Shown: in pieces, positions 1,845 through 64,000 of the stretch | How the letters are laid out: the number at the start of each line of letters is the position of its first letter | How positions within the stretch are numbered: position 1 is the first letter of the stretch | Source of the DNA: Blastocladiella emersonii ATCC 22665 | Lineage: Eukaryota > Fungi > Blastocladiomycota | Assembly: GCA_025594325.1 (NCBI GenBank) | Contig: JANHCV010000008.1 | Location: 496,001-560,000 of the forward strand | DNA: 64,000 bases | Direction: 5' to 3' | Notes under the pieces: generated by a model | What the model was told of the DNA's origin: nothing | Seen by the model: the letters and a program-made list of their open reading frames with translations, nothing else | The model's database searches: none | Program-made: the position numbers and the translations under genes

Positions 1845-1984
1845 GTGGGTGAGTGAGTGAGTTGTATCGTGTATTGGCGTGATCTTGTACAGTTTGTGAT
1901 GTATCGGTAAGTTGTATTCGCAATGACTGAGATGAGCGACGCGTCGACGGCGGAGCACTTGCCCTCCCACGTCGCCGCAGCACC

Positions 1985-3927
1985 ATGATAGAAGCCAATG
2001 GATTCACACCGCAACTTGCTGCATCGCGGCCCGCGGGCAAGACGCATGAACTTTCTGCAACTGACAGTGTGAATGGAGACGCGACCAAAGTCCTCCTCGC
2101 GCTGCTCGGCTCGCGCATCGCCTACATCCGCCTGGGCCTCTCGCACCGACCCTGCAACGCGCCTTCTCGTCTAAGCCTGGCACACCGACACCCGGTCGCC
2201 GGTGTTGGAGAACTAAAAATCCAGCTACAGTCGGCGGCGCGGACCCCCCACGGCTTCTTCGGATCGAGGTCAACGGCCCGGTCGGGAAGACCGTTGCCGG
2301 CCGGAACACGGAACGCAAGTTTTGTCATCGAACTCATCTCGATCTGCATACACACAACTTGCTTCGCCGCACTCATCTCGATCTGCATCGCCGTCGCAAA
2401 CACGTTCTCCCTCGCGTTCTCGTACTTTGCCGCATCAACGGCCCGAATCCCGCTCTCGGTCCAGCGATTCCACCCGTCAATCGCGCGGGTCTCGGTCGCC
2501 ATCTCGTTCGCGATCACGGTCAACCAGCGTGCGATGCAGTCTGGAACCGTGAACCTGCTCGCCTGTACCCTGCCCGGCCGATAATGGTATGAACCCAACT
2601 TCGCCAGCTTCTCAAGCTACACAAGTTTCTCGAACTTCTAAATCTTCTCACTCTTCGCCAGCAGTTCAAGATTCTCAAGCTACTTCATCTTCTCCAGCCT
2701 CTCCAGCTTCGCTTTCCTCACTTGCGTCCAGCTTCTCGCACCAAATCGCCGGCGTGGACTTCGCCCGCAGGCCTAGCCCAATTCCGCGTCCTGCTCGACC
2801 AGATCATGGAGCAGGCCGGCCCAGGCACCCTTGCCCAGCTTGCTCTCCTCTGCCGTGCTGACATGCCGCAGCACGTCTTCCACGCGCTCGCCTTCGTTTT
2901 GGACACTAACACGCCCGACGCCGCCGCGCGGGACGCGATCGCCGAGACACTTGACCCGCGAGTCGCGAAATGGCTCGAGCTCACGCGCGGGGAATCCCAG
3001 TCGGCCCCGACCTTCGCGAAGCGGTTCCGCAAGTTTCTCGCTCGCGAGTCTTCCGCGGCCCCGTTCGCCACGCAGCCCGCGCTGCGGTTCGCGTTCATCG
3101 ACAAGGCCCTGGCTAGCGTTGCTGTGAGTGGGCCGGCGCGCGACCGGCTGTACCCCGGTGCACTGCGGTGGACCTCGCTCAACAAGCTCGCGGAGCTCGT
3201 GTGCTGCGCGATCCATGCGCAGCAGCAGCTCGAGAGGGAAATTGGATTGGTCGCGCCGTTCGTCGCGTCGGTGCCGGCGGGTTTGGAGGCACCGGGTCCG
3301 CTTGCTTTGACCGCGCCGAGCGCGTCCGCTGACCACAATGGCGCGAGGCCGTACAGGCAGAGAGCCAGTGCGCTCTCTCGGCTCACCGCGCCTCCAACAC
3401 CGGCTGCCCTGGTCCTTGACGAAGACATCTCCACTGCATCCTCTCCTTCGGCTGCTCTCACTGGTCGCCCACAGTTGATTGACTTAGCTGCCGATCGCAC
3501 ACGCGCTGGTTCGTCCGAGCTCGCTCCACCGAAACCCATGGAGAGCACCCCCATGCTCCCAGCGTGCACCTTCTGCCATCACCTCACCGCCCCCCCGCCC
3601 GCGCTCGCGCTCGACTCGCCGCCGCCAGCACACACGCTCGCGACATGTCCGCGGTCCCGCAACTCGCCCGCGATCGCGGCCGCTATCAGCCTCGCGCTTT
3701 GCACGGCAGGACTCTGGCCGGGTCCTTGCGTCTATACGGACGGCGAGGTCGTGGCGCGGATCCGCGTGCTGGTCGAGCAGTTTCGTGCAGGGGAGCAGGG
3801 TAGTGGGTCCACTGCCGCGGCGGCGGTTGCGGTAGGAGTCGCGAACCTCATTGCGTGCCTCGAGCTCGAGCGGGAGGACCGGTGGAGTGTTTGGTGCGCT
3901 GTGGGTCGCGCGATAAGGGATGGGTAG
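1985..3927 (+). pseudogene. RS/Gag-like family copy 1 (disrupted)
   Basis: All family domains are present but split: frameshift before ~2322, in-frame TGA at 2550-2552, and an apparent 5-nt deletion at ~2758 (GTGGACT|TCGCCC where paralogs read V-D/N-L-E-S-P). Confidence 0.8.
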
Positions 3928-4386
3928 AATGGATGGGATTGGGGGTTGTACGTGACCTGGGAGGTGATGGCTGCGGCGTGGGCTGAGGGACGCGATGGTC
4001 GTGGCCAGGTGACGCGCGCGAGCATGTTGTTGTTGCGCGTTCGATCGGCCGCGGTAGGCTTTCGCTTCACGTGCGCGTTTGATTCATGAGCATCAGTGGA
4101 GACGGAATCGTGTGGTCATCCGAGGGGAGCCGTTGCCCTGATCAAGCTCGTTGATGTACAGGTGGCAGGCGCCGCAACCGCAAAGAGCAGGTGGAGGCGA
4201 CCGAGGTCCGGCGGCGAGCACAGCTTGGTATCGTCGAGAAAGATGCACCTGCTGCTGCCCTGCATCACGCCGAGTAGCACGCCGTCAAACGGGCGGTGCG
4301 TCTCGCAACAAACGCGTCTCCCGCGCCACCGTTGGGATGAGCGTCGCGTCCTTCCGACTCTGTCCTCCCACGCCACACAAACCACC

Positions 4387-6585
4387 ATGATAGAAACGAA
4401 TGAAAATCACTTGCAACTTGCTGCATCGTGCTCTGTGACTACTGTGGGTGACGTTGTCAACGCGACGGGTGACGCATCGCACGAGCGGCCGGCTCCTTCG
4501 AGGTTTGCCCTGCTTGACTCGCGCATTCAGACCATCCGACTGGGTCTCTCGCACCGACTTGGCGTTGCTCCGACCTTGGGCAACCCGACGCAGCTACCCC
4601 CGACGCAGCTACCCCCGACGCAGCTACCCCCGACGCAGCTACCCCCGGCGAATGTAGCGATGGAGCTAGAAAGCGAGATGGCGGTGTTCCTGGCCGCGGC
4701 GCAACTTGCAGCGAACTTTGCCAACGCCGGCGCTGTGGGAACCACGCCTGTCGAGCACCATCTCTACACGGAAAATCCCTCTACTTCGGACTTTATTCAC
4801 AGCTCCCGATCAAACTCACCTTTCGAAGCCGATAATCGCTCTTGGATACCCTCGCGCTCTCGTTCTCGCTCACGCTCACGATCTCGTTCTCGGTATTGGA
4901 CTCGCCGGTCTCCCGAGTTTTGGTCGCCTTCCCGCTCGCCGTCACGCTCGCCTTCTGACATACCGTGGCGGTCCAAGTCCCGTTCAAACTCGCGTTCTCG
5001 CTCCGGTCCTTGGATGCACCAGGCGCGCGAGTATCAGTCCCGCTCTCGCTCTCGGTCACGCCCACCCTGCGAAATGAATTGGCCAGCCAGGTCCCGCTCG
5101 CGTTCGCGTTCTCGGCCCCGACTTCGCCCGTCTCCACCTCCAACGGTTCAGCCGCGGTCGCGATCTCGCTCAACCAGTGCTCGGCGCAGTGCCAGACCAG
5201 AGCCCCGCTTATCTTCTCGAGGCTCGCATGCGCTGCTCTCAAACGAGGACCCGACATCGTACACCCCGCTTACTTCGATTGTTGACGGCTTCTCGTCTCA
5301 AATCTCCGACGTGAACCTGGAGTCACCAGCTGGACTTACCCGTTTTCGCACCTTGCTTGACCACGCCCTTGAAGCAGCTGGGCCGGGCAACCTCGCGCGC
5401 GCCGCGCTCCTCTGTCGCCGCGACATGTCGCAGCGCGCGTTCCACGCGCTCGCCTTCGTCTTGGACGACGAAATGTCCGACTCGACCGCTTGGCACGCCA
5501 TCGTCGAGGCGCTCGACCCAGCGCGCCGAACCGCGCGAGTCACAGAGTGGCTCGACCTTGCTCGCAGGGCAGATGAAACGGCGCAATGCTTCATGCGTCG
5601 ATTCAACAAGTTTCTCAGCCGCGAGTCGGCCGCGGCCCGCTTTGCGACTCGGCATGCGCTACGGTTTGCTTTCGTTGACAAGGCGCTGGCCTGGAAGGTT
5701 GTCGATCGTCGCGAGCGGCTCCAGCTCTATGACCTCGCCTTTCGGCGGACCTCGCTCAACACGCTGTCCGCGGCAGTCCACGAAGTGGTCAATCGTCAAC
5801 AGTCGAATGCGAGCGCCCGCATACGCGATGTGTCGCTGTCTCCGACCCCGCTTGGACGTGGCTCGAGTGCTTCGACAGCGAACAAGCTGGCCGCCGTTAC
5901 ATCGGCCACTAAGGTCGAAGTGGCGTCGACTGGACTGGCTGAGCCTTTGCCAACCGCTTCAACCGGAATCAAACCGGTCGCTCCAACATTACTTGCTCCA
6001 ACGACGCGGGTTCCGATCAAACCAGTCAAGTCTTCCTCTTTAGCTTCATCGGAACCGGACTTGGAAAAATTGACTGCTATTGGAGCACTAAAATCAAAGG
6101 AGCCTGATCATCCTCGCACCGCTCCCGCGTCGGTCAACGATTGCACCCTCGCTGGCTCCAAGGTCACAAAACCACGTACTTATTCCGCCCCCTCGCCTCC
6201 ATCAACGACTTGGAAAAAAATTGAGTGGTCGAACCCGGCTCCAGCTCCCCCGCCCGTGTGTGCCTTTTGCAATCACCTCGGCTTCCCCGTCTTGTTGCCG
6301 CCGCACACGGTTACTTCATGCGAGCTGGCCCGCGACACGCGCCCGATCGTGGAAACGATTAGCGCCGCGATCTCTGCGGCGCAACTCGACGTCAAAATCA
6401 ACGCCGTGACGGACAGTGAGATCGTCGCGCGGATCCAGTTACTCGTCAAGCAGCTCCGCGCGAGCGACTTGCGCACAAGAGCGGCGGCCGCGGTCTCGTA
6501 CCTCGAGGCGTGCTTGGTGCTGGACTGGCCGGAGCGGGGAAAGGTGTGGTGCGAGGTGTACACGGCGGTGATGGCTTGGGAGTAG
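4387..6585 (+). CDS. RS/Gag-like family copy 2 (intact, ~732 aa)
   Basis: ACCATG at 4387 is in frame with ORF 4096..6585. Contains IRLGLSHRL, an RS tract, the core GPGNLARAALLCRR...EWLDLARRADETAQCFMRRF, CAFC-x11-H-x4-C, and the YLEACLVLD...W tail. Confidence 0.85.
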   Translation: MIETNENHLQLAASCSVTTVGDVVNATGDASHERPAPSRFALLDSRIQTIRLGLSHRLGVAPTLGNPTQLPPTQLPPTQLPPTQLPPANVAMELESEMAVFLAAAQLAANFANAGAVGTTPVEHHLYTENPSTSDFIHSSRSNSPFEADNRSWIPSRSRSRSRSRSRSRYWTRRSPEFWSPSRSPSRSPSDIPWRSKSRSNSRSRSGPWMHQAREYQSRSRSRSRPPCEMNWPARSRSRSRSRPRLRPSPPPTVQPRSRSRSTSARRSARPEPRLSSRGSHALLSNEDPTSYTPLTSIVDGFSSQISDVNLESPAGLTRFRTLLDHALEAAGPGNLARAALLCRRDMSQRAFHALAFVLDDEMSDSTAWHAIVEALDPARRTARVTEWLDLARRADETAQCFMRRFNKFLSRESAAARFATRHALRFAFVDKALAWKVVDRRERLQLYDLAFRRTSLNTLSAAVHEVVNRQQSNASARIRDVSLSPTPLGRGSSASTANKLAAVTSATKVEVASTGLAEPLPTASTGIKPVAPTLLAPTTRVPIKPVKSSSLASSEPDLEKLTAIGALKSKEPDHPRTAPASVNDCTLAGSKVTKPRTYSAPSPPSTTWKKIEWSNPAPAPPPVCAFCNHLGFPVLLPPHTVTSCELARDTRPIVETISAAISAAQLDVKINAVTDSEIVARIQLLVKQLRASDLRTRAAAAVSYLEACLVLDWPERGKVWCEVYTAVMAWE
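4585..4644 (+). repeat. 15-bp tandem repeat x4 (CCGACGCAGCTACCC) encoding PTQLP
   Basis: Four exact units read directly; absent from the close paralog copy 6. Confidence 0.95.
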
Positions 6586-6749: not shown

Positions 6750-8494
6750 ATGATAGAAACCGATGAAAGACGATCACCACTTGCTGCAATGAGCTCGAAA
6801 ATACCTGCTGATGATGCACCCAGCGTAAATGGAGGAAACGAGCTGACCGCAATGTTGCTCCGCCTCTGCAACGAACGCCTGCAGCAGATCCGGCTCGGTC
6901 TCTCGCACCGACTTTCCAGCGCACCGTGGCTCTCGAACCGACTTTCCAACGCACCATGGAGTGTATCTTACGGGCCAGCTAGTGCTACGATTGGCGACCT
7001 TGGGGATCTGGCTGTCGCCCCCGCGATCGCATTGGGCTGCGTGGGAACGGCGGGCGAGGACGAACCACGCTTCGCGCCTGTGACCGACCAAGCACACTTC
7101 CGCCTCGAACTTCACCTTCAATCTCGACATACCTCTCAACCGACTCAGGAAATCGTGCAAAAGCCTCGTTTGACGAATTCGAAGCAACACCAATCTCTCT
7201 CTCTCTCAGCCCGCGGCCTGGGACAGTTCCAGGTCGAGGTCTCGCACTCATTTGCACTCTCAAGCTTGCGCTCGAACTTCCTCGCGTAATCGTTCACGTT
7301 CGCGTACTCGTTCTTGGTCCCGCAGTTCTTTGTGGTCCCGGCCGGAAACTCGCTCCAGCACTCGGTCTCCTCCGCGGTCTCCAGCTCCCGAGTCGCGTCG
7401 AACTCAGTTATCACCGGCTCCTAAACCCGGTGCGTCCTCGCGGACCGGCTTCCACAACAGTGGACATTCTCGAGACCTCAGCCCAGCTGCGCCTAGTCGC
7501 CCGACCGCTTCCTTGCCTGCACCCGCGGCGCAACAGCGACAGGGCAAGGCCAAAACGTACGACCCATCGTACCAGTTCTGCGCCCAGATCCGGAAGATTT
7601 CCAGCAGATCGCGGGCGTAGACCTGGAGACCCCGACAGGTTACGTCCTCATGTGCACCCTTCTTGACGAGCTCTTCACCTGCGCCGGCCTGAGAAAGCTT
7701 GCGCACGCGGTGCTGTTTTGCCGCTTCTCGCTTTCGCGGCGCGTGTACCACGCGTTCTCAGCCGTCTTGAACAAGGACACGGCCGATGACGCCGCACGCC
7801 AAGCCGTTCTCTACGCTATCGATCCGGCGCGGCGCTCGCGCCACTTGAACGAGTGGATCGACCTGGCGCGGTTTGTGCACGAGTCGGTCGGTTCGAGCAG
7901 TGTCTTCGCCGCCTCGGGTTCACCGATTTCAACAAGCTAGATATTCCAATTCGGTTCTCATTCCTTGACAAGACTCTCACTGGCGTTCTTAACGGCGGAG
8001 CACTCAACAATCTACGGGGCGAGGTGGTGGACGGACCTATGTCGCTCGCCAGCCTCACCAACCTCGTGCACAGCCGCGTACCTGACCCTCCGGCTCCTTC
8101 TGCTGTCCAGCCCGCGCGTGCTACAACCGAAAATATCCCCATCCCCGCGTGCGCCTTCTGCCAGCGCCTTGAAGGCGTTCTTGGCAGGAGGGACGCTCCA
8201 CACTGCCTTGTGGACTGCGTGCGTTCGCGAATGTTGGACCCAATCGTGTCCGCCATTACGCGAGGGCTTCGCGTCGCGCGGATCAGACTTACTCCCGACG
8301 ATATCGACCCGCCGACAGACGACGAGCTCGAGGCGCGCGTCTCGTTTGTTCTCAAGCGACTCCGCGCTGTCAAGGAAAGTGATGGACCGCTGTCTGCCGC
8401 CATCGCGCTCCTCGAGGCGTGCCTTGTCTTGGACGGCAACGCGCTGCGGAGCGTTTGGAGCGGGGTTTGTGATGCGATGACCACCACCAGGTGA
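6750..8494 (+). pseudogene. RS/Gag-like family copy 3 (disrupted)
   Basis: Three frameshifts: near the TC run at ~7195, a 1-nt loss at ~7604 just before IAGVDLETP, and a deletion at ~7888 inside the MHR-like motif. The knuckle CAFC-x13-H-x4-C and the tail are intact. A 30-bp duplication at ~6900-6960 doubles SHRLSSAPW. Confidence 0.8.
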
Positions 8495-8746: not shown

Positions 8747-10609
8747 ATGCATGAAACGAATGAAAGACTCCCGCAACTTGATGCAACCCTTTCGGCGGAC
8801 CCAGAAATGCAGGCGACAGCCTCCGGCGAGCGGCGAGGCGAGGCTGCCCTCCGAGTCCAACTCTGCGATGCACGCTTGCGCCATATCACGCTGGGCCTCT
8901 CGCATCGGCTCTCTGGAGCCCCTTGGATGGGCTCCGCAGCTTTCTGGACCTCGGCTGCTCCGATCCATCCTCTTGAACAACGCATCAGCTTGCTGGGAGC
9001 TGTAACCTGTGCGGAAGCGGGCGAACCAGCAAGCTCCAATGCTCAAGCTTCTGCACCCCTAGAGTCTCCAGACGTGCTCGCCGCGGTGCAAACGCATTCG
9101 GGTGCTCCATCAACGCCACCTATGCAAACGCGAACGCCTTCTCGCTCGTCCTCGCGGTCTCGTTCACTTTCACGTTCCCGTTCTCGCTCACGTTCAAAGT
9201 CTCGCTCTCGCTCTCGCTCACGTTCGAAGACTCGCTCTTGCACTCGCTCACATTCCCGTTCTCGCTCACGTCGCCGCTTTCACTCTCGCTCTCGCTCGCG
9301 CCCGCGCAGTAAGCGTCATTCGACTCGGCACCGCTCTCGTCGATTTCGCTCGCGCTCCTCCTCGCGCTCATCGCGGGATCCTGGACCCAGGTCGCGCTCG
9401 CGTCGGCGCACCCGCCGCGACTCTCTATCGCATTCGCAGTCGAGATCACGCTCCCGCTCTGCCGGTTCGCGTCCCGGGTCTCGTTCGCAAACTCGCTCAA
9501 CTTCGCTGCCCCAACGGAGCAACGCATACGAGTCCGGCTCATCGTATCGAACTACGGTTCGTCACAAAAGCGCTCGACGGAGGCTCCGCTGCTTTGTTCG
9601 CAACGTTGCACACTATATCCGGCAGGTGGACCTCGAAACTCCTGATGGATTGCTCAAACTGCGCGACTTTTTTGACGAGCATATCTTGGCTCGAGTTGGG
9701 CCGGGCACGCTCGCGTCCGCCGCACTGCACTGCCGCCGATGCCTGCTTCCGCACGTGTATGCTGCGCTCGCCTTGGTCTTGGAGGAGAACATGGCTGATG
9801 AGGCGGCGTGGGAGGCCATCACTACCGTGCTTGATCCTGCACGCCGTCCCGAGCGGGTCACCGACTGGATCGCTCTCGTGCGGGCTCAATGCGAGTCAGT
9901 TGACGAGTTCACTGGACGCGTGAAACGGTTTCTTGAGCGTAACGCCTTGGATAAACTCTTCGACACGCGGCCCGCTCTTCGACTAGCGTTTCTGGATAAG
10001 GCGACGACGCTTGATATTGGAACCAAGGCGCTAGAACTGCTCCAAGACCGCGCACAAACGCCCGTCACGCTTGGCAAGTTGGCCACTTTTATCAAACACG
10101 CTGAGAGGCGGCCCCTTGGGCGTAACGAGCGCACGGTTGTCGAGGCCCCACCTGTGCGCCTTGCTCCGTTGGTACAAGCGCAAAATCATACTTTGCCGAT
10201 TCCGCACTCGGTGCCGCCTGCTGCAGCGCAGCAGCCACCAACACCACTGTCGACTTTGTCCTGTGCGTTCTGTCGGCGCCTCGTCGTCCCACTTGGCCGG
10301 CGTGCTCCGCAACACCGCCTCGCAGACTGCAATCGAGTCCGTTTCACGCCTCCACTCACTGCCGCGGTCGACCACGCGATACGGGTGACGCGGCTGAACA
10401 TCACTCAAGCTGACCTGGACGCGGCGACGGACGAGGAGCTCACCGCTCGCATCACCTCGCTCGCCGATCGCCTTCGCGCGTTACAAGAGACCAACGACGC
10501 GGTCCCGCCTGGGGTTGGGTACCTGGACGCATGCCTTGTGCTTGATGCCCAGGAAAAGCGGAGGATCTGGAGCGCGGTCTGCGAGACCATTCAGACCAGG
10601 AAGCTGTAA
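8747..10609 (+). CDS. RS/Gag-like family copy 4 (intact, 620 aa)
   Basis: Uninterrupted ORF with all five family modules and a long RS tract. Confidence 0.85.
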   Translation: MHETNERLPQLDATLSADPEMQATASGERRGEAALRVQLCDARLRHITLGLSHRLSGAPWMGSAAFWTSAAPIHPLEQRISLLGAVTCAEAGEPASSNAQASAPLESPDVLAAVQTHSGAPSTPPMQTRTPSRSSSRSRSLSRSRSRSRSKSRSRSRSRSKTRSCTRSHSRSRSRRRFHSRSRSRPRSKRHSTRHRSRRFRSRSSSRSSRDPGPRSRSRRRTRRDSLSHSQSRSRSRSAGSRPGSRSQTRSTSLPQRSNAYESGSSYRTTVRHKSARRRLRCFVRNVAHYIRQVDLETPDGLLKLRDFFDEHILARVGPGTLASAALHCRRCLLPHVYAALALVLEENMADEAAWEAITTVLDPARRPERVTDWIALVRAQCESVDEFTGRVKRFLERNALDKLFDTRPALRLAFLDKATTLDIGTKALELLQDRAQTPVTLGKLATFIKHAERRPLGRNERTVVEAPPVRLAPLVQAQNHTLPIPHSVPPAAAQQPPTPLSTLSCAFCRRLVVPLGRRAPQHRLADCNRVRFTPPLTAAVDHAIRVTRLNITQADLDAATDEELTARITSLADRLRALQETNDAVPPGVGYLDACLVLDAQEKRRIWSAVCETIQTRKL

Positions 10610-11004
10610 TAATATATTGAGTTTTTTTGTCGATACCGAGCTTGAACGAAAACATGCCGAGCCGTTGCTCGATCGCGAAGATAACTGGGACTTAAAGCTT
10701 ATTAGGAAGTAGCGGGCAGGTTCGAGCGGCTGCAAGGACCTGGATCCAGTGTTGATATGCGCCAACAACTACGTGAACAGCCTCAGTGCACTCAAGGTAG
10801 CGCTACTCGTAGTACGTGTTGGGTATTGACCGGCCACGGATGAGATCGAGTCCGAAGAATACGCGACGCGTTGGCTATGCGCAGGTGATCGCCAGCTGCC
10901 CGACAGGCGTGACGTGCCCAGCTTGGTGTGGCGCACAGCTCAACCGCTTCCGCGCTCCCTCCGCCACACATGAATCGAATGGATAACTGCCGTAACTTAA
11001 TGCA

Positions 11005-13269: not shown

Positions 13270-15564
13270 ATGAACGAAGCGAATGAAACTCCACCGCAAC
13301 TTGCTGCATCGTGCCTTATGAGCACCATGGGTGCTGTCGGTGACATTTCGGGTGGGCGGTCAATTTCTTCCATGTTCGCCTTGCTCGACCTGCGCATTCA
13401 GAACATCCGACTGGGCCTCTCGCACCGTTTCGGCGGCATTCCGGTACTTGATAACCCGATGCAAGTTTCCACACCTGGCTCATCGACGGGGCTAGAGACC
13501 CAGCTGGCCGTGTTGCTGGAAGCGGCGCAGCTTGCTGAATACCCCGCCAACGTCAGCGGCGTGCGGCCCGTGCCCGCGGAGCCTCACCAAAGCGAACGGG
13601 ACACCTTTATGTTGGACTCTTTGAGCAGCTCCCGACCAAATACGTTTTTTGAGGCCGATGATTGGTCCAGGCCTCTTTCGCACTCGCGTTCTAGGTCGAG
13701 TCCACCTTCTTGGACACGTCACTCGCCCGAGCTTCAGTCGACATCCCGCTCGCCATTTCGCTCGCATTTGCAATCTCTCTCACGATCCAGATCTCGTCCA
13801 CGCTCGCGGTCCAGGTCACGCTCAAACTCGCGTTCCCGCTCTCGTCCTCGGACAGGTCACCCGCGCGGACGTTTGTCCCCTCGCCGTTCGCGAACGTGTT
13901 TGCCCTCTGAAATGCATTTGACGACCGGATCCCGTTCACGCTCGCGCTCGCGTTCTCGGCCCCGGTTCTGCTCGTCAACACCTCCAAGATCTCGATCGCG
14001 GTCGCGACCACGGCCGCGCTCGGCCAGCCCTCGGCGCGATGCCAGACCGCGGTTTCGCTCACCCGCTCGCGACTATATCGTGCGATGCTCGGAAGAGGGT
14101 CCAATCTCCTATGCTTCACTTTGCTCGGCTGTCGAACGTTTCTCGTCTCAAATCTACGGCGTGAGCTTGGAGTCATCCAATGGCCTCGCCCGTTTCCGCA
14201 CCATGCTGGACCACGTTCTCAAAGTCACTGGGCCGGGCAACCTCGCCCGCGCCGCGCTTCTCTGCCGCTGCGACATGTCTCGGCGCGCGTATCATGCACT
14301 CGCTTTCGCCTTGGACAAGGACATGTCTGACTCGGCTGCGTGGGAGGCGATCACCGAAGCGCTTGATCCGGTGCGCCGTCCCACTCGGGTCGTCGAGTGG
14401 CTCGACCTTGCTCGCAGGGAAAATGAATCGGAATACGGCTTCATGCGTCAGTTCGACGCGTTCCTGACCCGAGAGGGTGTCGCATCCCGTGTTGCAACTC
14501 AACCAGCCTTGCGCATTGTTTTCATCGACAAAGTGCTGACTGGCAACGCTGTCGACCAGCGCGAGCGGCTTCAGCTCTACGACCTCGCCGTTAGGCGGAG
14601 TTCGCTCAACACGCTGGTTAAGGAAGTGCAACGGATTCTTGAGCGCAAACGACAAATCCCGCGCGACGTGTCGCCACCTGCACTGCCAGCGGAGCCCGCC
14701 TTAGCCGCCCCAGCAGGGATTGAGCCTGCTGCATCGACCGCCCAACCCGAACCGAAAACAATCGACCTGGCCGGACCTATTCCGATCGCTCTGGCAAGAC
14801 TGGAACCACTCGCATCTGTCGAGGGTGCTCCAAGCGCAGCTCCAGACTTGAGCAGGTCGACCAGTCGAACTGTGATTGCACCGCCGGATCAACGCACCGA
14901 GTTGCCCAACCGGCCGAGGACGAATGCTCTCAGCCGCTTGAGCGCGCCTGCTGTGCGGCTTCCAAATACTTCGAGCACCGATCGCTCAAGGCAAAAACTG
15001 CCGGCAGCTTTGTCGTCTTGGATTAGGCCGCTTCTGCGCGCAGCGTCTCCACGTCCTCTACCAGCCTCGAGGGATCCTGATGATTCTTGCAAAGCTCGCG
15101 CGCCAGATTCTAGTTGTGTCCGCGCTGGTTCCAAAGTCGCAAAACCGCCTTCTCCCTCTCGACCTCCGCCTACATCCAAGGCTTGGAAACCCATCGAGTG
15201 GACCAACCCGGCACCGGCACCCGCTCCTTCATCCTTTTGCGCCTTTTGCGAGAACCTCGGCTTCCCCGCCCCGCTGCCGCCGCACACGGTCTCTTCTTGC
15301 CAGCTGGCCCGCGACACGCGCCCGATCGTGGACACAATCAGTACCGCGATTTGCAGGGCGCGGCTCAACGTACGGCTCAACGTCGTTACAGACAGCGAGA
15401 TTGTGGCGCGGATCCGGGTGCTGGTCGAACAGCTTCGCACAAGTGACTTGCGCGAAACTGCATCGGCCGCGATCGCGTACCTCGAGGCGTGCTTGGTGCT
15501 GGACCGGTCGACCAGGAGAATTGTGTGGTGCGAGGTGTCTACGGCGGTGATCGCTCGAGAGTAA
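13270..15564 (+). CDS. RS/Gag-like family copy 6 (intact, ~764 aa), closest to copy 2
   Basis: ACCATG at 13270 is in frame with ORF 13060..15564. All modules are present, and it shares the long linker and the KxIEWxNPAP motif with copy 2. Confidence 0.85.
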   Translation: MNEANETPPQLAASCLMSTMGAVGDISGGRSISSMFALLDLRIQNIRLGLSHRFGGIPVLDNPMQVSTPGSSTGLETQLAVLLEAAQLAEYPANVSGVRPVPAEPHQSERDTFMLDSLSSSRPNTFFEADDWSRPLSHSRSRSSPPSWTRHSPELQSTSRSPFRSHLQSLSRSRSRPRSRSRSRSNSRSRSRPRTGHPRGRLSPRRSRTCLPSEMHLTTGSRSRSRSRSRPRFCSSTPPRSRSRSRPRPRSASPRRDARPRFRSPARDYIVRCSEEGPISYASLCSAVERFSSQIYGVSLESSNGLARFRTMLDHVLKVTGPGNLARAALLCRCDMSRRAYHALAFALDKDMSDSAAWEAITEALDPVRRPTRVVEWLDLARRENESEYGFMRQFDAFLTREGVASRVATQPALRIVFIDKVLTGNAVDQRERLQLYDLAVRRSSLNTLVKEVQRILERKRQIPRDVSPPALPAEPALAAPAGIEPAASTAQPEPKTIDLAGPIPIALARLEPLASVEGAPSAAPDLSRSTSRTVIAPPDQRTELPNRPRTNALSRLSAPAVRLPNTSSTDRSRQKLPAALSSWIRPLLRAASPRPLPASRDPDDSCKARAPDSSCVRAGSKVAKPPSPSRPPPTSKAWKPIEWTNPAPAPAPSSFCAFCENLGFPAPLPPHTVSSCQLARDTRPIVDTISTAICRARLNVRLNVVTDSEIVARIRVLVEQLRTSDLRETASAAIAYLEACLVLDRSTRRIVWCEVSTAVIARE

Positions 15565-48993: not shown

Positions 48994-50455
48994 ATGAATC
49001 CAATGGAAAATCAACTACCTGCATTGCCGTTTGCAATCCTCGAAGCTATCCTGTGTGCGGCTGTTGCGCTCCATGGTCCGAGCGAGCTAGACGGACTCCC
49101 CAAGTTCGGGCGCGTCATGCCGCGAGCGTGTGCCCCCAAGGTTCACCTCGCAATCCGTCGGCAGCTACTCTTGCGCATTTCCGTGGACGAAGCTACTTCT
49201 CAGGGCCGCGTCGACGTGCTTGAAGCATGGCGGCAGTCGGGCTTCCCGCTCAGCTACTCTCGAAAGACTTTTGATGACGTGGGTTCGTTCGAGGCTCTTG
49301 ATTGGTGGTATCGCTCGGATCTTCCAATGCCAGAGGATGCGAACCGTTATCCGGTCAAAGTCGCCGTTTACTTCACGGGCCTGGTTAACACGACGAGTGC
49401 ATTGGTGCGCTGTTGCGATTTAGTTTCGATCTGAACCGGGACTCACTATTGCGACTCCACAGGAACTCACCCGCGAGGGCGAGGAGGTCGGCGATGATGT
49501 CGCGAAAAAGGTTGCAGCCGAGCTTTCTTCAATGCGGCAAAACTCGTGCGTGCTCAACCGATTTCGGATAACCGATACCGGTGCAGCCGCGATTTCCAAA
49601 GCCCTGGCAGTCAATCACACGATCAAACTCGTTGAAATCGCCTATTGCTCGCTGACTTATCCGCTGCTGTCCTTGCTACGCCTCCCCGTCACCATCACGC
49701 GCCTCATCCTGAGGGGAAACTGGGTGTTCACGGGCGCAGGAAGCTCTCGCTTGACGAGCGCGTCCGCGCTCCCATCCAATCTCGAACGGCTTACTATTTT
49801 GGGGGACAGTTATGTGAGCGACTCAGACGCCGAGTCGTTCTTCCGCCAGCTCCCACCGTCACTCAAGGTGCTCAAGTTGTCCGCCAATCGCTTTGATCGC
49901 GACTTCGACTTCTCATGCAGCCTTGGACAACACTTCCCGCCCGGTCTGCGCATGCTTGACTTGTGCCGGTCCTCGCTCCATTCTTGCGATTTGACTGGGC
50001 TTTTTAGTTCCCTACCAGCAAGGCTCGCCCACCTCAGACTCGCTGAGAACAAGCTTGACTATTCTGGCGCCAAGTGTCTCGCGCGGCATCTCCCGCCTGG
50101 ACTTGTTAAACTCGACATCAGCCGAAACGGGATTGGCGACGCTGGTGTCGCTGCCCTTGCGCCGCGTCTCCCAGGGACCTTACAAGGACTCGATGTTGGC
50201 TATGTGGACTTGACCGACCTTGGCGTCGATGTGCTGATCTCACACGCTCCTTGCAATCTCACCTGGCTGGTCTTGGACGGGGCCGAGCTCACGATCGAGT
50301 CCGTCGGGGTAATTCTTGGACAACTTCCTCCACGACTAGAACGTCTATCAATGACCCACTTGTTCGGCGAGGCAGCTGACCCCAGCTTTATTCAGGAATG
50401 TCGTCTGCGGGTGCCTGAAGGCATTGACTATCAAATCTCCTCAAGTGATACGTGA
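48994..50455 (+). CDS. RNI-like leucine-rich-repeat gene 2
   Basis: N-terminal SQGRVDVLEAWRQSG..LDWW motif, then LP..L..LDLS.N repeats. The frame change near 49420 is either a 58-64 nt intron ending GATTTAG or a frameshift. Confidence 0.65.
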
Positions 50456-54205: not shown

Positions 54206-54550
54206 TGCAAGATGTTATTTCATCAGCTAATCATGCAAGTGCGAGGAACAGGATGGCTTGAGGCGGGACGACGGCGTGAGAAGTGGGTGCGACGCGTCGC
54301 GTTCCGTGCTCAACGCCCTCACGTGCTTTTTACGCGTTCCGCAAACCTCTCTCCCCTCCGCTCGCCTGAGCCGAGCTTGGACTCCGTAACTGATTCAACT
54401 CTTGCCATTAACGCTCAAATGTGTGGAAGGCAAAGGCGCCCAAGTAAATCTGCGCTGTTCGGGTAAACTGACGCGAGAACGACGCGTCGCGCCACTTCAC
54501 GCCAGGAGTTCGGTTCACACGCGTCGTCGTCTCTCTCATACATCGCAACC

Positions 54551-56318
54551 ATGGAAGAAAAGAATGAATTATACGCTGTATCACTTGCTCCGGGCAGCTT
54601 GATGAGATTCCCAGGCCGGTTGACGACATGTGCGACGAGTCGGCATTGCTCGTCCGCGCGTGCGAATCGCACTTGAAGCGCATTGCACTCGGTCTTTCTG
54701 CTCGACTGCACAGTCTTCCCATGCGATGGGACTCGACACTAGAACTCCCAAACCGAGTTTTTGCGCGTCAGACCGCGGCGCTCAATCGCTCTCGAACCCC
54801 AAATCGGTCCTCGTCTGTCTCCCGATCCAGGTCTACGTCTCGATCGCGTTCTCGCAGCTCAAGTCGATCTTGTTCACGTTCTCGCAGCTCAAGTCGATCC
54901 CGTTTACGTTCGCGAGCGCACACACGATCCAGTTCTCCGCCTGCCCGCTCCGACTCCGCCTCACCTTATCGAGGCCGCTCTCGCCCCAGATTTCATTTTT
55001 CATACGGCTGGAGATGCAGGTCTCGCTCTCACTCATGGTCTCGTTCGCGTTCACGCTCTCGCTCTCGCTCGTGGCCCAGGAAAGCGCCACGGAGGTGCTC
55101 GCCGCGTCCACCTGCCGCTTCCGGTCGGCGACGCAAACGAGGTGGACGCAAACGAGGCCCACGGAAACAGCAGACACGCGCATACGGCAACAAAGCACGT
55201 ATGCCCTCCCCGCCTCGAACCGCTCCGGCAAGCTCGCTCACTGACGGGTCTTCTTCCACGGGCCCAGTTTCACTTGAGCAGTTGCGTGACATTATCCAAA
55301 GATTCTCACACTTGATCGAGGTGTTGGACTTGGAAACCGCGGCGGGCGTCGAGCAATTTCGGTGCATCATTGACTCCGTTCTCCAGGCAGCGGGGCCGGG
55401 CAACCTCGCGCGGGCTGCTTTCGCTTGCCGCGCGCACATGCAGCGTCGCCTATATCACGCACTTGCCATCGTCCTTCACGACGAAATGCCTGACGAGGTC
55501 GCGTGGGACGCCATTTCCGAGGCACTCGACCCCGCACGCCGCTCCGCAAAAATCAAGCAGTGGATTGGGCTCGCTCGGCGCAAAGACGAGTCGGTGGAAT
55601 ATTTCGCGCGCCGCTTTGAGTGCTGCCTAAACGACGTTTCTTCTTCGAATGGCTGTGCAACTCGGCTTCCGTTGCGCGTCACCTTCATCGAGAAAGCGCT
55701 TGCCGATATGAATGTTCCCGATCAATCACTGGACTGCCTTCGCGACCTCGCGTCGAGGCGAGCCTTGCTCAAGGACCTGGTTTTGCTTGTCCAGGTCACC
55801 GAAGTCGAACATTCGAAGTTCGCCCGCCGCCGTCGCCGTCCAGTCACTTCACTCGACCCTGCTCCTAAGGTGCCGCGTCCTCCGATGCCTTCTTTAAACG
55901 CGCCTCAACCCCTCTTTCGCCGCGTCCAATCCGCCCCACAGCTGCTACTAGAGCAACCCGTGCCTCACGCCGACAAGTCACATTGCCCATTCTGCGCCCG
56001 GCTCGCAGGCGGCCGCGACGCTGCCTTGGTCGTACATGATATTTCCGAGTGTGTCCATGCGCAAAACACGAACGCAATCGTGCTTGCCATACAAACTACG
56101 GTCTCCGCGACGCGCAGATTAGCTGCCCACCCGATGATGCACGTCCGTCTCGAGTCGACGAGCTGATAGTGCGGGTCAATATGTTGACGGACCGCCTCAG
56201 AACTTTGGCACGCGGCAGGCTTCTCGTCGTGCGCGCAGTCAAGTACCTCGAGGCGTCGCTTACGCTCGAACCCCAAGCGCTCCTGGCGATCTGGAACGCA
56301 ATTTGTAGGCCGCGGTGA
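54551..56318 (+). pseudogene. RS/Gag-like family copy 11 (frameshifts in leader and tail)
   Basis: Leader ATG 54551 is out of frame with ORF 54628..56166. A second frameshift at ~56090 puts the tail in ORF 56049..56318. The core and knuckle are intact. Confidence 0.75.
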
Positions 56319-56522
56319 TTAACTGCAATAAGTAAACAACAGATCTTTGCGAATGTCACGGAGCACTATGCGAGCGGAAGGCGGGCGATGTGAGAGCGAG
56401 GGTAACGGGAAGCGCGTTGCGCCACATCTGCGCTTGGCAGGTCCGTCGCGTGACTGTGGCGCCTCAAGCCCGCCTCCAAGGAGCGCTCGAGACAGCAGCT
56501 CTCCCCATGAAACACTCAAACC

Positions 56523-58061
56523 ATGAATAAAACGAATGAATTGCGCTCACCACTTGCTGCATTAAGCCCGGCGGTCCCAAACGAGTGTCCGGCCACTTCT
56601 AGCGACCCCAGCGGCCAGTCGGCCTTTCTGCTGGACTTGTGCAACGCGCGCCTGGCACACGTTCGACTGGGCCTTTCCCACAAGCTCGGAGCGGAGACGT
56701 GGTTTGGTTCAAGGGCATGGAGCACTTCTGCTGCTCCGGTTGTTGATTTGGAGCGGCGGCCTCAAACGCTCGAGGCCACGGCGCAGTTCTCTGAATCGAC
56801 TCTATCCGGAGCAAGCGACAACATCAACGGAACACCATTTTCATCTTCGCTTTGCGCGTTTGAAACGGTCTTGATCTCGGGCGAAACCCGTACGGGTCGT
56901 CTAAACCGCGCGGATTCACTGTCACGCTCCCGCTCGCGCTCGCATTCGCGGTCTCGCTCTGTGTCACAACAACACCCGAGTGTGATGTACAAGCGGATCT
57001 CGAGCGGCGTTTCGTCCAGACAGCGCACATTCCTCAGCGGAATTGTCAAGCGCTCGGCCGATTGTATAGCAAACGTGGATTTGGAGACGATGGTTGGCTT
57101 GCAGCGACTGCGCGTCTTTCTTGACAATATTTCAGTGCGCGCCGGTCCAGGAAACATTGCTTGCGCCGCCCTCCTCTGCCGTCGCGTCATGGCGCCGCGC
57201 GTTAACCATGCTCTCGCCTTGGTCCTCGAAGACGAAATGTCTGACGACACCGCTTGGAAAGCAATTACAGAGACACTCGACCCTGCTCAACGCACCGAAC
57301 GATTCACCGAGTGGCTCGACCTCGCGCGCGGTCGCGGCGAGTCGATACAAGAGTTTAAGCGCCGCTTCGCCTCGTGTCTCGAACGCGTCGCGCCCTTGCG
57401 ATACTTTTCCGATCGGCTTGCGGTCCGTCTTGCGTTTGTTGACAAAGCCATCGTTGGCACCTTGAGCGAGGATGTGCTCAACCGATTACGCGCCAAGGCA
57501 CTGTCGCGGATGTCGTTGGGCGAGTTTGCTGAGCTTGTCCAGCATGCCGAGACCGAAGAGAATCGGTACCAGCAACAACACGGGCGGGTGGTTCGCAATG
57601 CGCTGGCGACTTGTCCACCTTCCCCTGCTCCATCGGCACCAGCTTCAGTGTTACCACCAGTTTTAGCGTTACCACCAGCACGGCAGCAATTCCAGGACCA
57701 TGACCCAGTGTGTGCCTTTTGTCGCCACATTACTCCATTCGTAGCGAAGCGACTCGCTCCACACGAGCTCTCTGAATGCAAACGGGTCCGAGACACGCGG
57801 CCAATCGTTGCGGCCGTCAACCAGGGGCTCCGAGTTGCCCGAATCCGGTTCACGTCAGCCGATGCCAATCCCGCTTCAGATCGGGACCTCGAGGCCCGCG
57901 TGCGGTCGCTGCTCGAGCGGTTTCGCGCCATCGAGCATGACAATTCCGCGTATCCGCCGGCCGCCAAGTACCTCGACGCGTGCCTCGAGCTCAATCGCGG
58001 CGAGCTGCGGAAGATCTGGAGTCTGATATGTGATTCGGTCAATCCTAAGAAAAGGAGCTAG
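56523..58061 (+). CDS. RS/Gag-like family copy 12 (intact, 512 aa)
   Basis: Uninterrupted ORF with a short RS tract, the core EWLDLARGRGESIQEFKRRF, and CAFC-x13-H-x4-C. Confidence 0.85.
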   Translation: MNKTNELRSPLAALSPAVPNECPATSSDPSGQSAFLLDLCNARLAHVRLGLSHKLGAETWFGSRAWSTSAAPVVDLERRPQTLEATAQFSESTLSGASDNINGTPFSSSLCAFETVLISGETRTGRLNRADSLSRSRSRSHSRSRSVSQQHPSVMYKRISSGVSSRQRTFLSGIVKRSADCIANVDLETMVGLQRLRVFLDNISVRAGPGNIACAALLCRRVMAPRVNHALALVLEDEMSDDTAWKAITETLDPAQRTERFTEWLDLARGRGESIQEFKRRFASCLERVAPLRYFSDRLAVRLAFVDKAIVGTLSEDVLNRLRAKALSRMSLGEFAELVQHAETEENRYQQQHGRVVRNALATCPPSPAPSAPASVLPPVLALPPARQQFQDHDPVCAFCRHITPFVAKRLAPHELSECKRVRDTRPIVAAVNQGLRVARIRFTSADANPASDRDLEARVRSLLERFRAIEHDNSAYPPAAKYLDACLELNRGELRKIWSLICDSVNPKKRS

Positions 58062-58920: not shown

Positions 58921-60494
58921 ATGAACGACTCGCATGAAAATCTATCGCCACTTGCTGCATTGTGTTTCGTGAAGCAGATGGATCACTTTGACGCGTCATC
59001 GAAGCAAACGGCCGCACCGCTGCAATCCTGCTTGAGCAGTGTAACGCGCGACTCCGACACATCGCGCAGGGCATCTCGCACCGCCTGTCTGGATCGACAA
59101 CTATAGCTTTTTCAGCGCACTTGTCTGCTGTCGGTCCCACTTGCGATTCGAGAAACCCGTCGGTGCTGACTGAGTGGGATTGGATTGCAGCCGGACCAGC
59201 GTTTTGGGCCCGCTCCCGCTCACATTCTCGTTCCCGCGCACCGTCTCGGGATCGCGATCGCCCTGGTTCCCGCAAGCGTTCTCGATCGCCGCGACGGTGC
59301 AATGAAAGATCGCGCTCGCGTTCTCGTGCGCAATACGGATCTCGATCTCGGTCTCGCTCGCGCTCCCAATCGCGTCCTCGTACCGTGCCCCGAAACCACT
59401 CTCCATCACATAACAAAGGGCGCAATCGTGATCGTGACCGCCAGTGCGCAAAAAGTGACAAGACAGCGTTCCAGAAGCTCAAAGTCGTTGTGCTCAACGC
59501 CGCCCAGTCCATTGCGGGCGTAGACGTGGAGACACCGGAGGGACAGGCGAAGATGAGTAATTTTTTGAACCTACTTTCGAGCCGAGTTGGACAAGGAAAG
59601 CTTGCACGCGCCCTTCTCATTTGCCGACGTTCGCTACAGCCGCGCGTTTTTCATGCATTCGCCCTGGTCATCGACATCGAAATGACGGATCAGGCGACGC
59701 GAAAGGTCGTTTTCGAAGTGCTCCACCCCGCGCGCCGATCCCAAGGGTTGTCAGAGTGGATGGATCTTGCTCGGCGCGACGGCGAATCGGTTCGAGAATT
59801 CAGCAAACGCTTCGAACAGGTGCTCGACCGCATCGCTTCAACCAAACTAATTCCCGAACGGCTTGCCATGCGACTCGCGTTCATAGAAAAGGCTCTCACT
59901 GGCTTCGCGAATGAGGCGACAATTATGCAGGCCCGTAACGCTGCTGCGGTCCATCTTCCACTCAGCGTCCTCGCTCGCGTGGTTGAGCAGGCCGAACGCA
60001 TGCCGGAGCAACAAAAGCCGCACGAGACAATTATGTTTCGGTCGTCCACCTCTAAGATGATTGTGCATTCTCGACCACACTCGCGTGGTCCTGCTCCGCA
60101 GCGCCTTTCCGCCCCGGAGCAGCGGGCATCTCGACGTGAACCCAGCCCTCTCGACTCGCAATGTGCCTTTTGCAGCTGCCTCGCGCCATTCCATTACAAG
60201 GCCACGAACCCGCACAAGTTTTCAGACTGCGGACGAGCGCGTGACTCCCATACCACGGTTCAGGACATCAACCACGGGCTCCGCGTCGCACGGATAAAGC
60301 TCGGCTGTGGGGACCGGCGCCTCGTTGACACAAACGAGGTTGCGGGCCGCGTTCGGTCGCTCATTGGTGAGCTTCGAGCTCTCGTACAGCCGCATCAAGC
60401 GTCACTGCTCGCGATTGGCTATCTCGAGGCGATCCTGGTTCTCAATCCCGAGAAGCTGCAGCGGATTTGGATGTTGGTTTGTAACTCGTTTTAA
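58921..60494 (+). pseudogene. RS/Gag-like family copy 14 (one early frameshift)
   Basis: The leader frame breaks at ~59015. The rest (LLEQCNARLRHIAQGISHRL through to the stop at 60494) is a single open frame. Confidence 0.7.
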
Positions 60495-62571: not shown

Positions 62572-62848
62572 CGTGTCGAGGACGAGAATCGCCACTTGTG
62601 CTGTGTCTAAGGAATAAAGGCATCGTTTGTGATGATTCAAGGACCTTCGCTACACGCACGGACGTCAGAACTTTAATGGATAGCAGGAAGCCTACAAAGG
62701 TACAGCGAGATCCGACTCGAGCCGCGAAAATCGACGCGCTCGCGATGTGTGGCTGCGCCACACACGTGCATAGAAGTGGTGTCGTTGGAGGGCAGGCGTG
62801 GCGAACCTATCGGCCGTCAATCCGACCTCGCTTCCCCGTCGAGATTCA

Positions 62849-64000
62849 ATGAATAGCTCCCATGTAAATCAACCTCCACTTGCTGCATATTGCTCGCCGA
62901 CGGTCATGGATCAGCCAGACGTGCCCGCTTTGATCTCTAGCCAAACTACCGCGCTCCTCCTCCAACTGTGCAACGCGCAGAATGAGCACATCCTCCAAGG
63001 TCTCGGCCACCGTGTTTCCGGCGCACCGTTTCTGGAGACACCGGGTTATCTCCAATCGGTCGCAATCGGTCGCCCCTATCCAAGCGCTTGCGCATGACCT
63101 CGAAGGGCTGGAGCGAGAGCAAGCCCGACTTGCTGTAAGCTCGCACTTGGCACCCGCACACTCGCCGTCCCGAGGCAGGTCTTTGACCTTGTTCCCTTCT
63201 ACTATGCATAAACGGGCCAAAGAGAGTCCTCGATCGCGCAGCCCACCCCGCTCACTGTGCAAGTCACGCGCCCCTTCGCGTTCGCGCTCGCACTCGCACT
63301 CTCGTGAACGCAGTAAACGCACATATTTATCCCGATCTCGTTCCCGTTCGCGCTCTTATTCTCGCTCGCGCTCTCGCTCTCGCTCTCGCTCTTGTAAACG
63401 CAACAAGCGCAGATCGTTACAGCGGCCACGCTCTCGTTCTCGTTCTCGTTCTCGTTCTCGTTCTCGTACTTACTCAAACTCGCGGCTTAGGCCACGATCA
63501 TTGAGCCGCTCGCCGACTCGTGCGACTCGAGCTGCACTACACTTGAGCACAGTAACGCCGGGTTTACACCGTTTGCAACCCTCAAACTTGGAACCCCCAT
63601 CGGCTATCAAGCCGCAAGCTGCACCGGACCGTCCTGGTCACGTCGAACCAAAGTGCGCCTTCTGCCAGCGCATCGTCCCTTTTGAGCGCCTACGCTTTGC
63701 GCCACACGTGTTTTCCAGGCGCCCTCGAGTGCGCGATCCGGTGAAAGCGGCAGAAGTCATCCACCTAGCTGCCCGTGTTGCGCGCCTTCGGTTGACTAAG
63801 GACGACATCGTCCCCTCCGCCAACTTGATTGAGGGCCCGTTTGGTCCAAAATCGCGTCAGAACGCCACGTCAGAACAGAACCGTGAGAATGACCTCATTC
63901 CGCTCCAGCCCGTTCTGCTCATAACCGTGACCCAAACGTCATCGCCTCATTTCATTCTCACACTCGCTGAGAACGCTCGCTGCGACCCGACGAAAGCGCG
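62849..64000 (+). pseudogene. RS/Gag-like family copy 16 lacking the capsid-like core (runs off window)
   Basis: N-terminal helix, then a frameshift at ~63070. My translation then gives an RS tract followed directly by EPKCAFCQRIVPFERLRFAPHVFSRR with no core, and the frame stays open to 64000. Confidence 0.7.

Follow-up and report, generated by a model that had tools for sequence, protein, structure and literature searches.

Gene starts in the window

The window, a 64-kb stretch of the Blastocladiella emersonii ATCC 22665 genome, holds a series of Gag-like copies together with LRR, DUF4470 and F-box-like genes. The label F-box-like comes from reading the sequence by eye, and Pfam recognises no F-box in the genes that bear it, nor in L089, L100 and L122. 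Many gene starts of these families carry the ten-mer ACTTG(C/A)TGCA, either exact or with mismatches, at the following sites.

2014..2023, + strand: exact ten-mer, partial Gag-like copy; CCATG at 1983-1987 (ATG 1985)
4416..4425, + strand: exact ten-mer, Gag-like copy; in-frame ATG 4387
6779..6788, + strand: exact ten-mer, Gag-like copy; ATG 6750
8776..8785, + strand: exact ten-mer (A variant), Gag-like copy; ATG 8747
10995..11004, + strand: one-mismatch ten-mer ACTTAATGCA, Gag-like copy; abuts ATG 11005, with both ATG boxes and the CT box
13299..13308, + strand: exact ten-mer, Gag-like copy; ATG 13270
15746..15755, + strand: exact ten-mer (A variant), Gag-like copy
17683..17692, + strand: one-mismatch ten-mer ACTTCATGCA, Gag-like copy; both ATG boxes
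20006..20015, + strand: exact ten-mer, Gag-like copy; ATG 19980
28719..28728, + strand: exact ten-mer (A variant), LRR gene; among the first codons, translated D-L-M-Q
39926..39990, + strand: orphan module; CTCCCC box, single ATGGAA box, exact ten-mer at 39981-39990
44397..44406, - strand: exact ten-mer, first DUF4470 gene; abuts ATG 44396
44588..44597, + strand: exact ten-mer, Gag-like copy divergent to the first DUF4470 gene; ATG 44601
46335..46344, + strand: exact ten-mer (A variant), F-box-like gene; among the first codons, translated D-L-M-H
49014..49023, + strand: two-mismatch ten-mer ACTACCTGCA 5' of the second LRR gene; both ATG boxes
54206..54215, - strand: degenerate ten-mer (7 of 10 matches), second DUF4470 gene; precedes ATG 54205
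54583..54592, + strand: two-mismatch ten-mer ACTTGCTCCG, Gag-like copy; both ATG boxes, long frame from 54628
56552..56561, + strand: exact ten-mer, Gag-like copy; ATG 56523
58950..58959, + strand: exact ten-mer, Gag-like copy; ATG 58921
62878..62887, + strand: exact ten-mer, Gag-like copy running off the window end; ATG 62849

A sequence-only reading of this DNA had described a start-proximal motif shared by the four families. The motif is real: 15 exact ten-mers are present where 0.26 would be expected, and none of 100 shuffles reached that number. They are distributed over 11 Gag-like starts, one LRR gene, one DUF4470 gene, one F-box-like gene and the orphan site, which is followed only by a 34-codon frame (M-E-T-N...), and five further starts carry the ten-mer with one to three mismatches. 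The ten-mer lies 29 nt downstream of the ATGs that had been quoted at 4387, 6750, 8747, 13270, 56523, 58921 and 62849, and 26 nt downstream of that at 19980. The CCATGA and (G)AATGAAA boxes are also found at the spacing that had been claimed, the CCATGA box at -31 to -26 from the ten-mer in window copies. The earlier consensus had missed a CTCCC box at about -50.

The assignment of the motif to whole families holds in part. Besides the 11 exact Gag-like copies, those at 10995 and 17683 have one mismatch and that at 54583 has two. One DUF4470 gene carries an exact ten-mer (44397-44406, - strand), but the gene starting at 54205 matches at only seven of ten positions; similarly, the LRR site at 28719 is exact but that near 49014 has two mismatches, and the F-box-like gene at 46335 has an exact copy but its paralogue at 22028 has none. 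Positions 1-2013 of the window, in which the SAXO-UPF3 intergenic region lies, contain neither an exact nor a one-mismatch copy.

Occurrence in the genome

The ten-mer occurs 1218 times in the listed contigs of B. emersonii ATCC 22665, as compared with 116 occurrences of a reversed-pattern control. About 10% of the copies are expected by chance, so that a single case, such as the KDEL-receptor gene described below, may be accidental. The motif had been taken as the mark of a co-regulated cluster, which is not borne out by this spread over the contigs; the three-box form that corresponds to the earlier consensus occurs 29 times, with eight of these copies in the window, and is present on nine contigs. 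The sixfold density of ten-mers in the window arises because the motif-bearing families sit there in tandem copies. Carriers in the genomic sample are mostly not Gag-like, and Pfam identifies among them Nop/PRP31, Cut8, cyclophilin, a DEAD helicase and a methyltransferase. The motif of the window is the local and fullest form of a ten-letter signal found near about 1000 gene starts, including those of housekeeping genes. For the Gag-like cluster the lesson is a negative one: the leader common to its genes is simply the kind of promoter usual in the expanded families of this genome, and no sign of a special unit.

Outside this species, 21.8 kb of Catenaria sequence around PRP31 contain no ten-mer and the corresponding 22.1 kb of Allomyces contain one, with none at the PRP31 start in these 44 kb of the two genomes. 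A literature search found no paper describing the motif and nothing relevant on promoters of Blastocladiella or core promoters of chytrids, and strings of the ten-mer were matched only by chance, for example in primers.

Structure of the element

The first A of the ten-mer is essential. With this base the excess is 10.5-fold, whereas any other base at the same position gives 698 copies against 450, a 1.55-fold excess. Among 49 copies the flanks are unconserved except for an A at +10, and the ten-mer is therefore not a dispersed repeat. Of the two variants only A contains an ATG (22 of the 49 copies), which opens the long frame in two of 40 loci in one sample and three of 75 in another.

The pyrimidine box CTC(C/T)C is present 30-55 nt upstream in 318 of 621 reverse-strand ten-mers (51%; control, 5), with a peak at -55 to -46, and it is oriented with the ten-mer (37 against 2 mirrored). 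Its distance is similar whether the ATG lies upstream (median -50) or downstream (median -42) of the ten-mer, and is tighter than the distance between ATG and ten-mer, which ranges from about -31 to +40. Spacers between the boxes are variable, an ATG(A/G)A box lies 6-14 nt upstream in 264 copies of the ten-mer, and the CCATGA box has no fixed place genome-wide. No enrichment of TATA is detected at ten-mer promoters. A mirrored-ATG control is uninformative because CATG boxes are identical on both strands. No propensity for RNA folding is seen around the ten-mer (mean z +0.49 for 119 sites).

Reading frame and codons

The ten-mer had been proposed to act as nucleic acid and not as peptide, independently of the reading frame, and this is upheld. 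Gag-like copies translate it as L-A/D-A, the F-box-like and LRR genes as D-L-M-H/Q. At the DUF4470 gene with ATG 44396 and the Gag-like copy with ATG 44601 it is untranslated and lies 5' of the ATG, as it also does in leaders of unrelated housekeeping genes. Where the ten-mer is translated, the same non-preferred codons always recur: CTT, used for 21% of Leu; GCT and GCA, used for 23% and 15% of Ala; and GAT, used for 35% of Asp. Two frames together with fixed non-preferred codons indicate that the constraint is on nucleotides. The ten-mer thereby dictates early codon choice in dozens of genes, being a natural regulatory signal laid over coding sequence.

A long frame passes through the ten-mer, which is thus transcribed, in 28 of the 40 composite loci, a count inflated by paralogy, and starts from an ATG at -31 to -4. 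In the Gag-like copy at 56552, the sole in-frame ATG ahead of the conserved N-terminal block is that at 56523, 5' of the ten-mer. The first 31 residues encoded by the KDEL-receptor gene align to residues 1-31 of the receptor of known structure, so that the ten-mer falls in codons 9-12. The leader arrangement also occurs, with the first downstream ATG within 30 nt of the ten-mer in 45 of 80 sampled copies; classification of the unbiased sample by longest open frame is too noisy for use in this GC-rich genome. In most cases an upstream ATG serves as the start codon of the gene and does not open a separate frame ahead of it. Upstream ATGs closed by stops are found in nine of the 40 composite loci, again subject to paralogy, and in two genes of the window: the DUF4470 gene at 44396 has two upstream ATGs that open frames of four and two codons, and those of the Gag-like copy at 44601 end in TAA stops, the second of which overlaps the main ATG (44599-44603). 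Control of the GCN4/ATF4 type depends on short frames in the leader, 5' of the main start; a module of this kind is possible, as judged from the DNA, for about a quarter of the composite loci.

A probable promoter-proximal DNA element

The ten-mer, usually followed by A, is probably an oriented promoter-proximal DNA element of B. emersonii that lies in transcribed DNA, a reading to which we give a probability of roughly 0.55. It sits 40-55 bp 3' of the pyrimidine box and about 40 nt or less from the start codon, on either side. By analogy with the pyrimidine boxes of other fungi, transcription may start near this box, and the ten-mer would then fall in a short leader or in the first codons. 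A putative sequence-specific DNA-binding protein would read the ten-mer and set or boost initiation. The Gag-like, LRR, F-box-like and DUF4470 families of the window have the fullest form, in which one or two ATG(A/G)A boxes are added; these supply the start codon in most copies, so that the ten-mer is read as codons.

Several known systems provide comparisons. In animals, some factor sites are oriented and start-proximal, such as Drosophila Motif 1, bound by M1BP, and the YY1 site just downstream of the start. The ten-mer seems comparable to these in being a specific, gene-oriented site (10-12 nt in animals) tens of bases from the presumed transcription start, in serving a sizeable subset of genes including housekeeping ones, and in that it may overlap the start of the coding sequence. 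It has no sequence similarity to them, belongs to another kingdom, and its binding protein is putative. On this analogy the ten-mer would resemble such sites more closely than a contact of TFIID. In filamentous fungi, pyrimidine-rich (CT) boxes occur upstream of transcription starts. CTC(C/T)C is likewise a short pyrimidine tract of the coding strand, upstream of the presumed start region in TATA-less promoters, with the frequency and orientation given above (51%; 37 against 2), but differs in that a second element of high specificity accompanies it at a nearly constant distance. We know of no pairing of a CT box with a specific element in other fungi. In Phytophthora, a lineage-specific core promoter consisting of an initiator, a flanking region and a downstream element has been found by positional bias (PMC3599244). 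Its elements are similarly short, oriented, stereotyped in place near gene starts of TATA-less promoters, recognised from sequence alone and, as far as seen for the ten-mer as well, restricted to one lineage. They are unlike the ten-mer in sequence, and they are degenerate, ten near-invariant bases being far more specific.

Some familiar elements were also considered. Sites of bZIP proteins are symmetric or nearly so, act in either orientation and do not need a flanking A. The ten-mer recalls the C/EBP-like TTGC-GCAA and the C/EBP-ATF composite TGATGCAA, but a palindromic bZIP site is rejected because the flanking A carries most of the excess (10.5-fold against 1.55-fold), because the ten-mer shares the orientation of the pyrimidine box and the gene, and because just 7 of 49 copies have G at +11. 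Elements of the DPE/MTE type are fixed at about +18 to +33 from the transcription start, and have the degenerate consensus RGWYV, which no five-base stretch of either variant of the ten-mer fits. The RFX X-box is also rejected, and so is a structured RNA, in view of the folding score.

Alternative explanations

An oriented element in transcribed sequence fits a signal in the RNA equally well. The ten-mer might be recognised in mRNA, near the 5' end and the start codon, by a putative RNA-binding protein that controls translation, storage or localisation of about 1000 messages, in some genes jointly with the short upstream frames opened by ATG boxes. The strand specificity of the ten-mer within transcribed sequence, the unstructured surroundings expected near a start codon, and the stop-closed upstream ATGs, with the stop/ATG overlap at 44599-44603, are consistent with such a signal. 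However, the distance to the start codon is wide and that to the upstream DNA box is tighter, ten near-invariant positions are long for a single-stranded RNA site, and upstream ATGs are mostly the main start codon. We consider this explanation unlikely, if worth keeping in mind. TISU, a translation initiator of short 5' UTRs, holds the start codon at a fixed place. The ten-mer shares with it a position at the boundary of leader and coding sequence, constraint at the nucleotide level and short leaders, but here the place of the start codon varies, from about 31 nt 5' of the ten-mer to 40 nt 3' of it, and the ATG of the A variant seldom serves as the start. Blastocladiella zoospores are said in the older literature to hold messages silent until germination. 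It is conceivable, with a lower probability than for an RNA signal in general, that the ten-mer is a leader tag by which an RNA-binding protein marks about 1000 messages, such as those silent in zoospores, for timed translation or storage; in the expanded families, re-initiation after tiny upstream frames that stop at the main start codon would provide a further switch.

An initiator is similarly doubtful. Transcription would then begin at the A of the ten-mer, with the pyrimidine box (-50) and CCATGA (-30) as upstream core-promoter elements. The essential A at position 0, the place of CCATGA at -31 to -26 in window copies, which is usual for a TATA box, and a start codon 0-30 nt downstream in most leader-type genes all argue for it. 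On the other hand, the start codon is needed 5' of the ten-mer in the 28 composite loci, in the Gag-like copies at 4387 and 56523 and in the KDEL-receptor gene, and CCATGA is not fixed in place genome-wide. The human initiator consensus is BBCA+1BW, with C at -1 (PMC5287114); at the ten-mer, just 20 of 49 copies have a pyrimidine there (A 17, C 17, G 12, T 3).

A peptide conserved at the N-termini of these families (M-E-T-N-E ... L-D/A-A), with a role in sorting or stability for instance, is very improbable. Several families do begin with M-E/N-x-N-E and read the ten-mer as L-A/D-A, and the orphan site at 39981 retains M-E-T-N with different codons. For the ten-mer itself, the peptide is already contradicted by the other frame in LRR and F-box-like genes, by its untranslated position in the DUF4470 gene, the Gag-like copy with ATG 44601 and most housekeeping genes, and by synonymous sites that never vary. 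Least credible is a sequence that spread to gene starts, whether as part of a mobile element or repeat or, as suggested earlier, as a signal for packaging into Gag-like particles. The 11 exact copies at Gag-like genes in one window speak for it, but the genome-wide sample already contradicts it. A retroelement packaging signal is specific to the RNA of its own element and usually structured, whereas the ten-mer has 1218 sites mostly at unrelated genes, unconserved flanks, variable spacers and no stable fold (mean z +0.49).

Uses of the element

Work is under way to establish B. emersonii as a model of phototaxis and of early evolution in fungi, and its genome paper does not mention promoters (PMC9730499). 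A ten-base, oriented element that hardly varies and is present at about one gene in ten would offer a handle for expression constructs and a bait for purifying the factor that would read it. It may also aid the prediction of gene starts, many annotated starts possibly lying just before or after the ten-mer.

Ten-mer copies in the window

Shuffled sequence predicts 0.26 copies of the ten-mer ACTTG(C/A)TGCA in the 64-kb window; 15 are present, 14 plus-strand and one minus-strand. At 11 of these 15 sites the exact ten-mer precedes a Gag-like copy, and wherever the conserved I-R-L-G-L-S-H-R-L block of the Gag-like copies is intact, the ten-mer lies 100-110 nt ahead of it. The remaining exact copies, and degenerate ones at further gene starts, are listed below.

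28719: exact, inside the opening codons of an LRR gene
44397-44406 (minus): exact, directly next to a DUF4470 start codon
46335: exact, among the opening codons of the gene named F-box-like in the sequence-only reading
39981: exact, with only a 34-codon frame behind it
10995, 17683 and 54583: degenerate, at three further Gag-like starts
49014: degenerate, at the second LRR gene
54206-54215: degenerate, at the second DUF4470 gene

The excess bears out the start-proximal motif that the sequence-only reading had described as shared by these gene families, although some of the starts it named carry a degenerate form and the second F-box-like paralogue (22028) is without the ten-mer. Ahead of the window ten-mers stand further boxes, CTCCC near -50, CCATGA at -31 to -26 and (G)AATGAAA at -17 to -11, counted in nucleotides upstream of the ten-mer start.

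A full promoter-like module (CTCCCC box, ATGGAA box and exact ten-mer) is found at 39926-40069 on the plus strand, facing the 3' end of a minus-strand gene; the 34-codon frame, the sole one behind it, begins M-E-T-N, and the module may be the relic of a lost gene or the start of an unrecognised short product. At 24000-28400, in the interval separating the F-box-like and LRR genes, G+C is 68-75%, and both strands carry long open frames that overlap and have low-complexity translations.

Distribution in the genome

The assembly searched comprises 32.65 Mb in 21 contigs, the window being C20:496001-560000; a PRP31 reading frame from its contig C1 has 100% identity to the NCBI protein of B. emersonii ATCC 22665. 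The published assembly of that strain likewise comprises 21 contigs, with 10,031 genes, and promoters and leaders are not mentioned in the genome paper (PMC9730499). In the assembly searched, the ten-mer occurs 597 + 621 times on the two strands and the reversed control pattern 64 + 52 times, an excess of ~1100 copies over background, or about one gene in ten; its density in the window is 6-fold the genome average. Among 80 copies fetched from contig C1, the nearest downstream ATG is within 30 nt in 45, and Pfam identifies PRP31 (Nop domain), Cut8, cyclophilin, a DEAD-box helicase, a methyltransferase and an F-box protein among the products downstream of sampled ten-mers.

An ATG(A/G)A box stands 6-14 nt upstream of 264 ten-mers in the genome and of none in the backwards control. 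The full three-box pattern of the sequence-only reading, two upstream ATG boxes followed by the ten-mer, occurs 29 times, 8 of them within the window and 6 on the opposite strand in a second cluster of the window's own contig (C20:341951-415209), the remainder being on contigs C1, C3, C4, C6, C8, C11, C17 and C21. When 40 composite loci (ATG box plus ten-mer; counts include paralogues) were fetched and searched by tblastn, 5 were Gag-like, all in the sister cluster, 10 were relatives of the window LRR genes and one matched the F-box-like gene; Pfam added a 2OG-Fe(II) oxygenase, an ankyrin protein, NTF2 and FNIP repeats, and many had no match. Given this mixture, the composite form is typical of expanded, fast-evolving families genome-wide, and it is not confined to the window cluster. 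The second-box ten-mer, AACGAATGAA, recurs with a ~3.3-kb period in two long tandem arrays (G000:C10:159697-213133 and G000:C11:2817085-2833736 of this genome).

With the ten-mer spread genome-wide and the composite form on many contigs, the proposal that the motif marks the cluster as a co-regulated unit finds no support, and nor does that of a packaging signal for Gag-like particles. Absence from the SAXO and UPF3 genes does hold, no ten-mer being present in window 1-2013, which contains their intergenic region, but it only places these genes among the ~90% without the ten-mer.

In Catenaria and Allomyces 44 kb was checked, too little to tell presence in Allomyces; 22 kb of Allomyces macrogynus contains a single exact ten-mer (L082:3845-3854, minus), which precedes a same-strand gene by ~310 nt, measured to its annotated start.

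Constraint on nucleotides

A long frame extends back through the ten-mer to an ATG at -31 to -4 in 28/40 composite loci and 10/14 window copies, often with no other in-frame ATG for at least 80 nt, which puts the ten-mer in transcribed sequence; the Gag-like copies 4387 and 56523 have no alternative start before the conserved block. The LRR family reads the ten-mer in two frames: one gives L-A/D-A immediately followed by L-P-x-E-L-L, and the next gives D/N-L-L/M-Q, several residues nearer the N-terminus. In frame 0 its codons are invariably CTT, GCT or GAT, and GCA, whereas in window genes CTT makes up 21% of Leu codons, GCT 23% and GCA 15% of Ala codons, and GAT 35% of Asp codons. In 9/40 composite loci, stop codons end the frames opened by the upstream ATGs, with the main ATG placed after the ten-mer, as also at the DUF4470 gene at 44396 and the Gag-like copy 44601. 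With the two reading frames, the fixed codons and the untranslated ten-mers at 44396 and 44601, the ten-mer is constrained as nucleotides, and the sequence-only reading was right to propose a signal that works as nucleic acid instead of as a peptide.

At 44557-44603 (plus), the second upstream frame of Gag-like copy 44601 passes through the ten-mer and ends in a TAA (44599-44601) that shares one base with the main ATG (44601-44603); another fetched locus, L091, has a comparable overlap.

In a housekeeping gene, that of the KDEL receptor (L075, G000:C1:2789655-2792154), whose exons were searched separately, residues 1-31 of the product align with the same residues of the solved receptor (E = 1.6e-7), which places the ten-mer at codons 9-12. 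It lies inside the highly conserved N-terminus at an S-to-M difference, D-L-M-H against D-L-S-H in the solved homologue, and is either a chance copy or a DNA signal that altered a conserved residue. A velvet-factor gene has the same layout.

A coupled pyrimidine box and possible mechanisms

Same-strand CTC(C/T)C boxes cluster 40-65 nt ahead of the ten-mer. CTC(C/T)C lies 30-55 nt upstream of 318/621 reverse-strand ten-mers in the genome, compared with 5 control-pattern matches, and is oriented (37/75 upstream, 2/75 at the mirrored position). Its median position is -50 where an ATG precedes the ten-mer and -42 where ATGs are only downstream; the ten-mer is thus tied more tightly to the DNA box than to the start codon. 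No TATA signal was seen upstream of sampled ten-mers.

In other fungi, transcription starts near a pyrimidine box. By analogy, the most economical reading would place the transcription start near CTC(C/T)C, and the ten-mer would then lie a few tens of bases within the transcribed region, where a candidate sequence-specific binding protein would read it; such a protein is favoured over a general-factor contact by the ten near-invariant bases. Oriented start-proximal factor sites exist in animals and are the closest analogues that can be named. The ten-mer may instead act at the RNA level. Over 119 sites the sequence around it is not inclined to fold (mean z +0.49), in keeping with recognition as DNA or as single-stranded RNA alike. 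An initiator, in which the ten-mer itself marks the transcription start, is weakened: in many genes the start codon precedes the ten-mer, so that transcription must begin further upstream in these, and the pyrimidine expected of an initiator at -1 is lacking when ten-mer copies are compared. A palindromic factor site is ruled out by asymmetry, since replacing the first A by any other base lowers the genomic excess from 10.5-fold to 1.55-fold, and a dispersed repeat is rejected because the sole conserved flank is A at +10 (34/49).

A sister cluster on the same contig

A sister cluster with Gag-like copies lies ~90-150 kb upstream of the window on the same contig in opposite orientation. Two of its loci were compared with window 44557-56561.

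L095: G000:C20:401015-403514
L096: G000:C20:412979-415478

Two sister-cluster proteins are 100% identical to the window Gag-like copies at 56523 and 44601, and motif-to-motif spacing is 11,964 bp in both pairs; the sister cluster reflects a recent inverted segmental duplication or, alternatively, a duplicate introduced in assembly.
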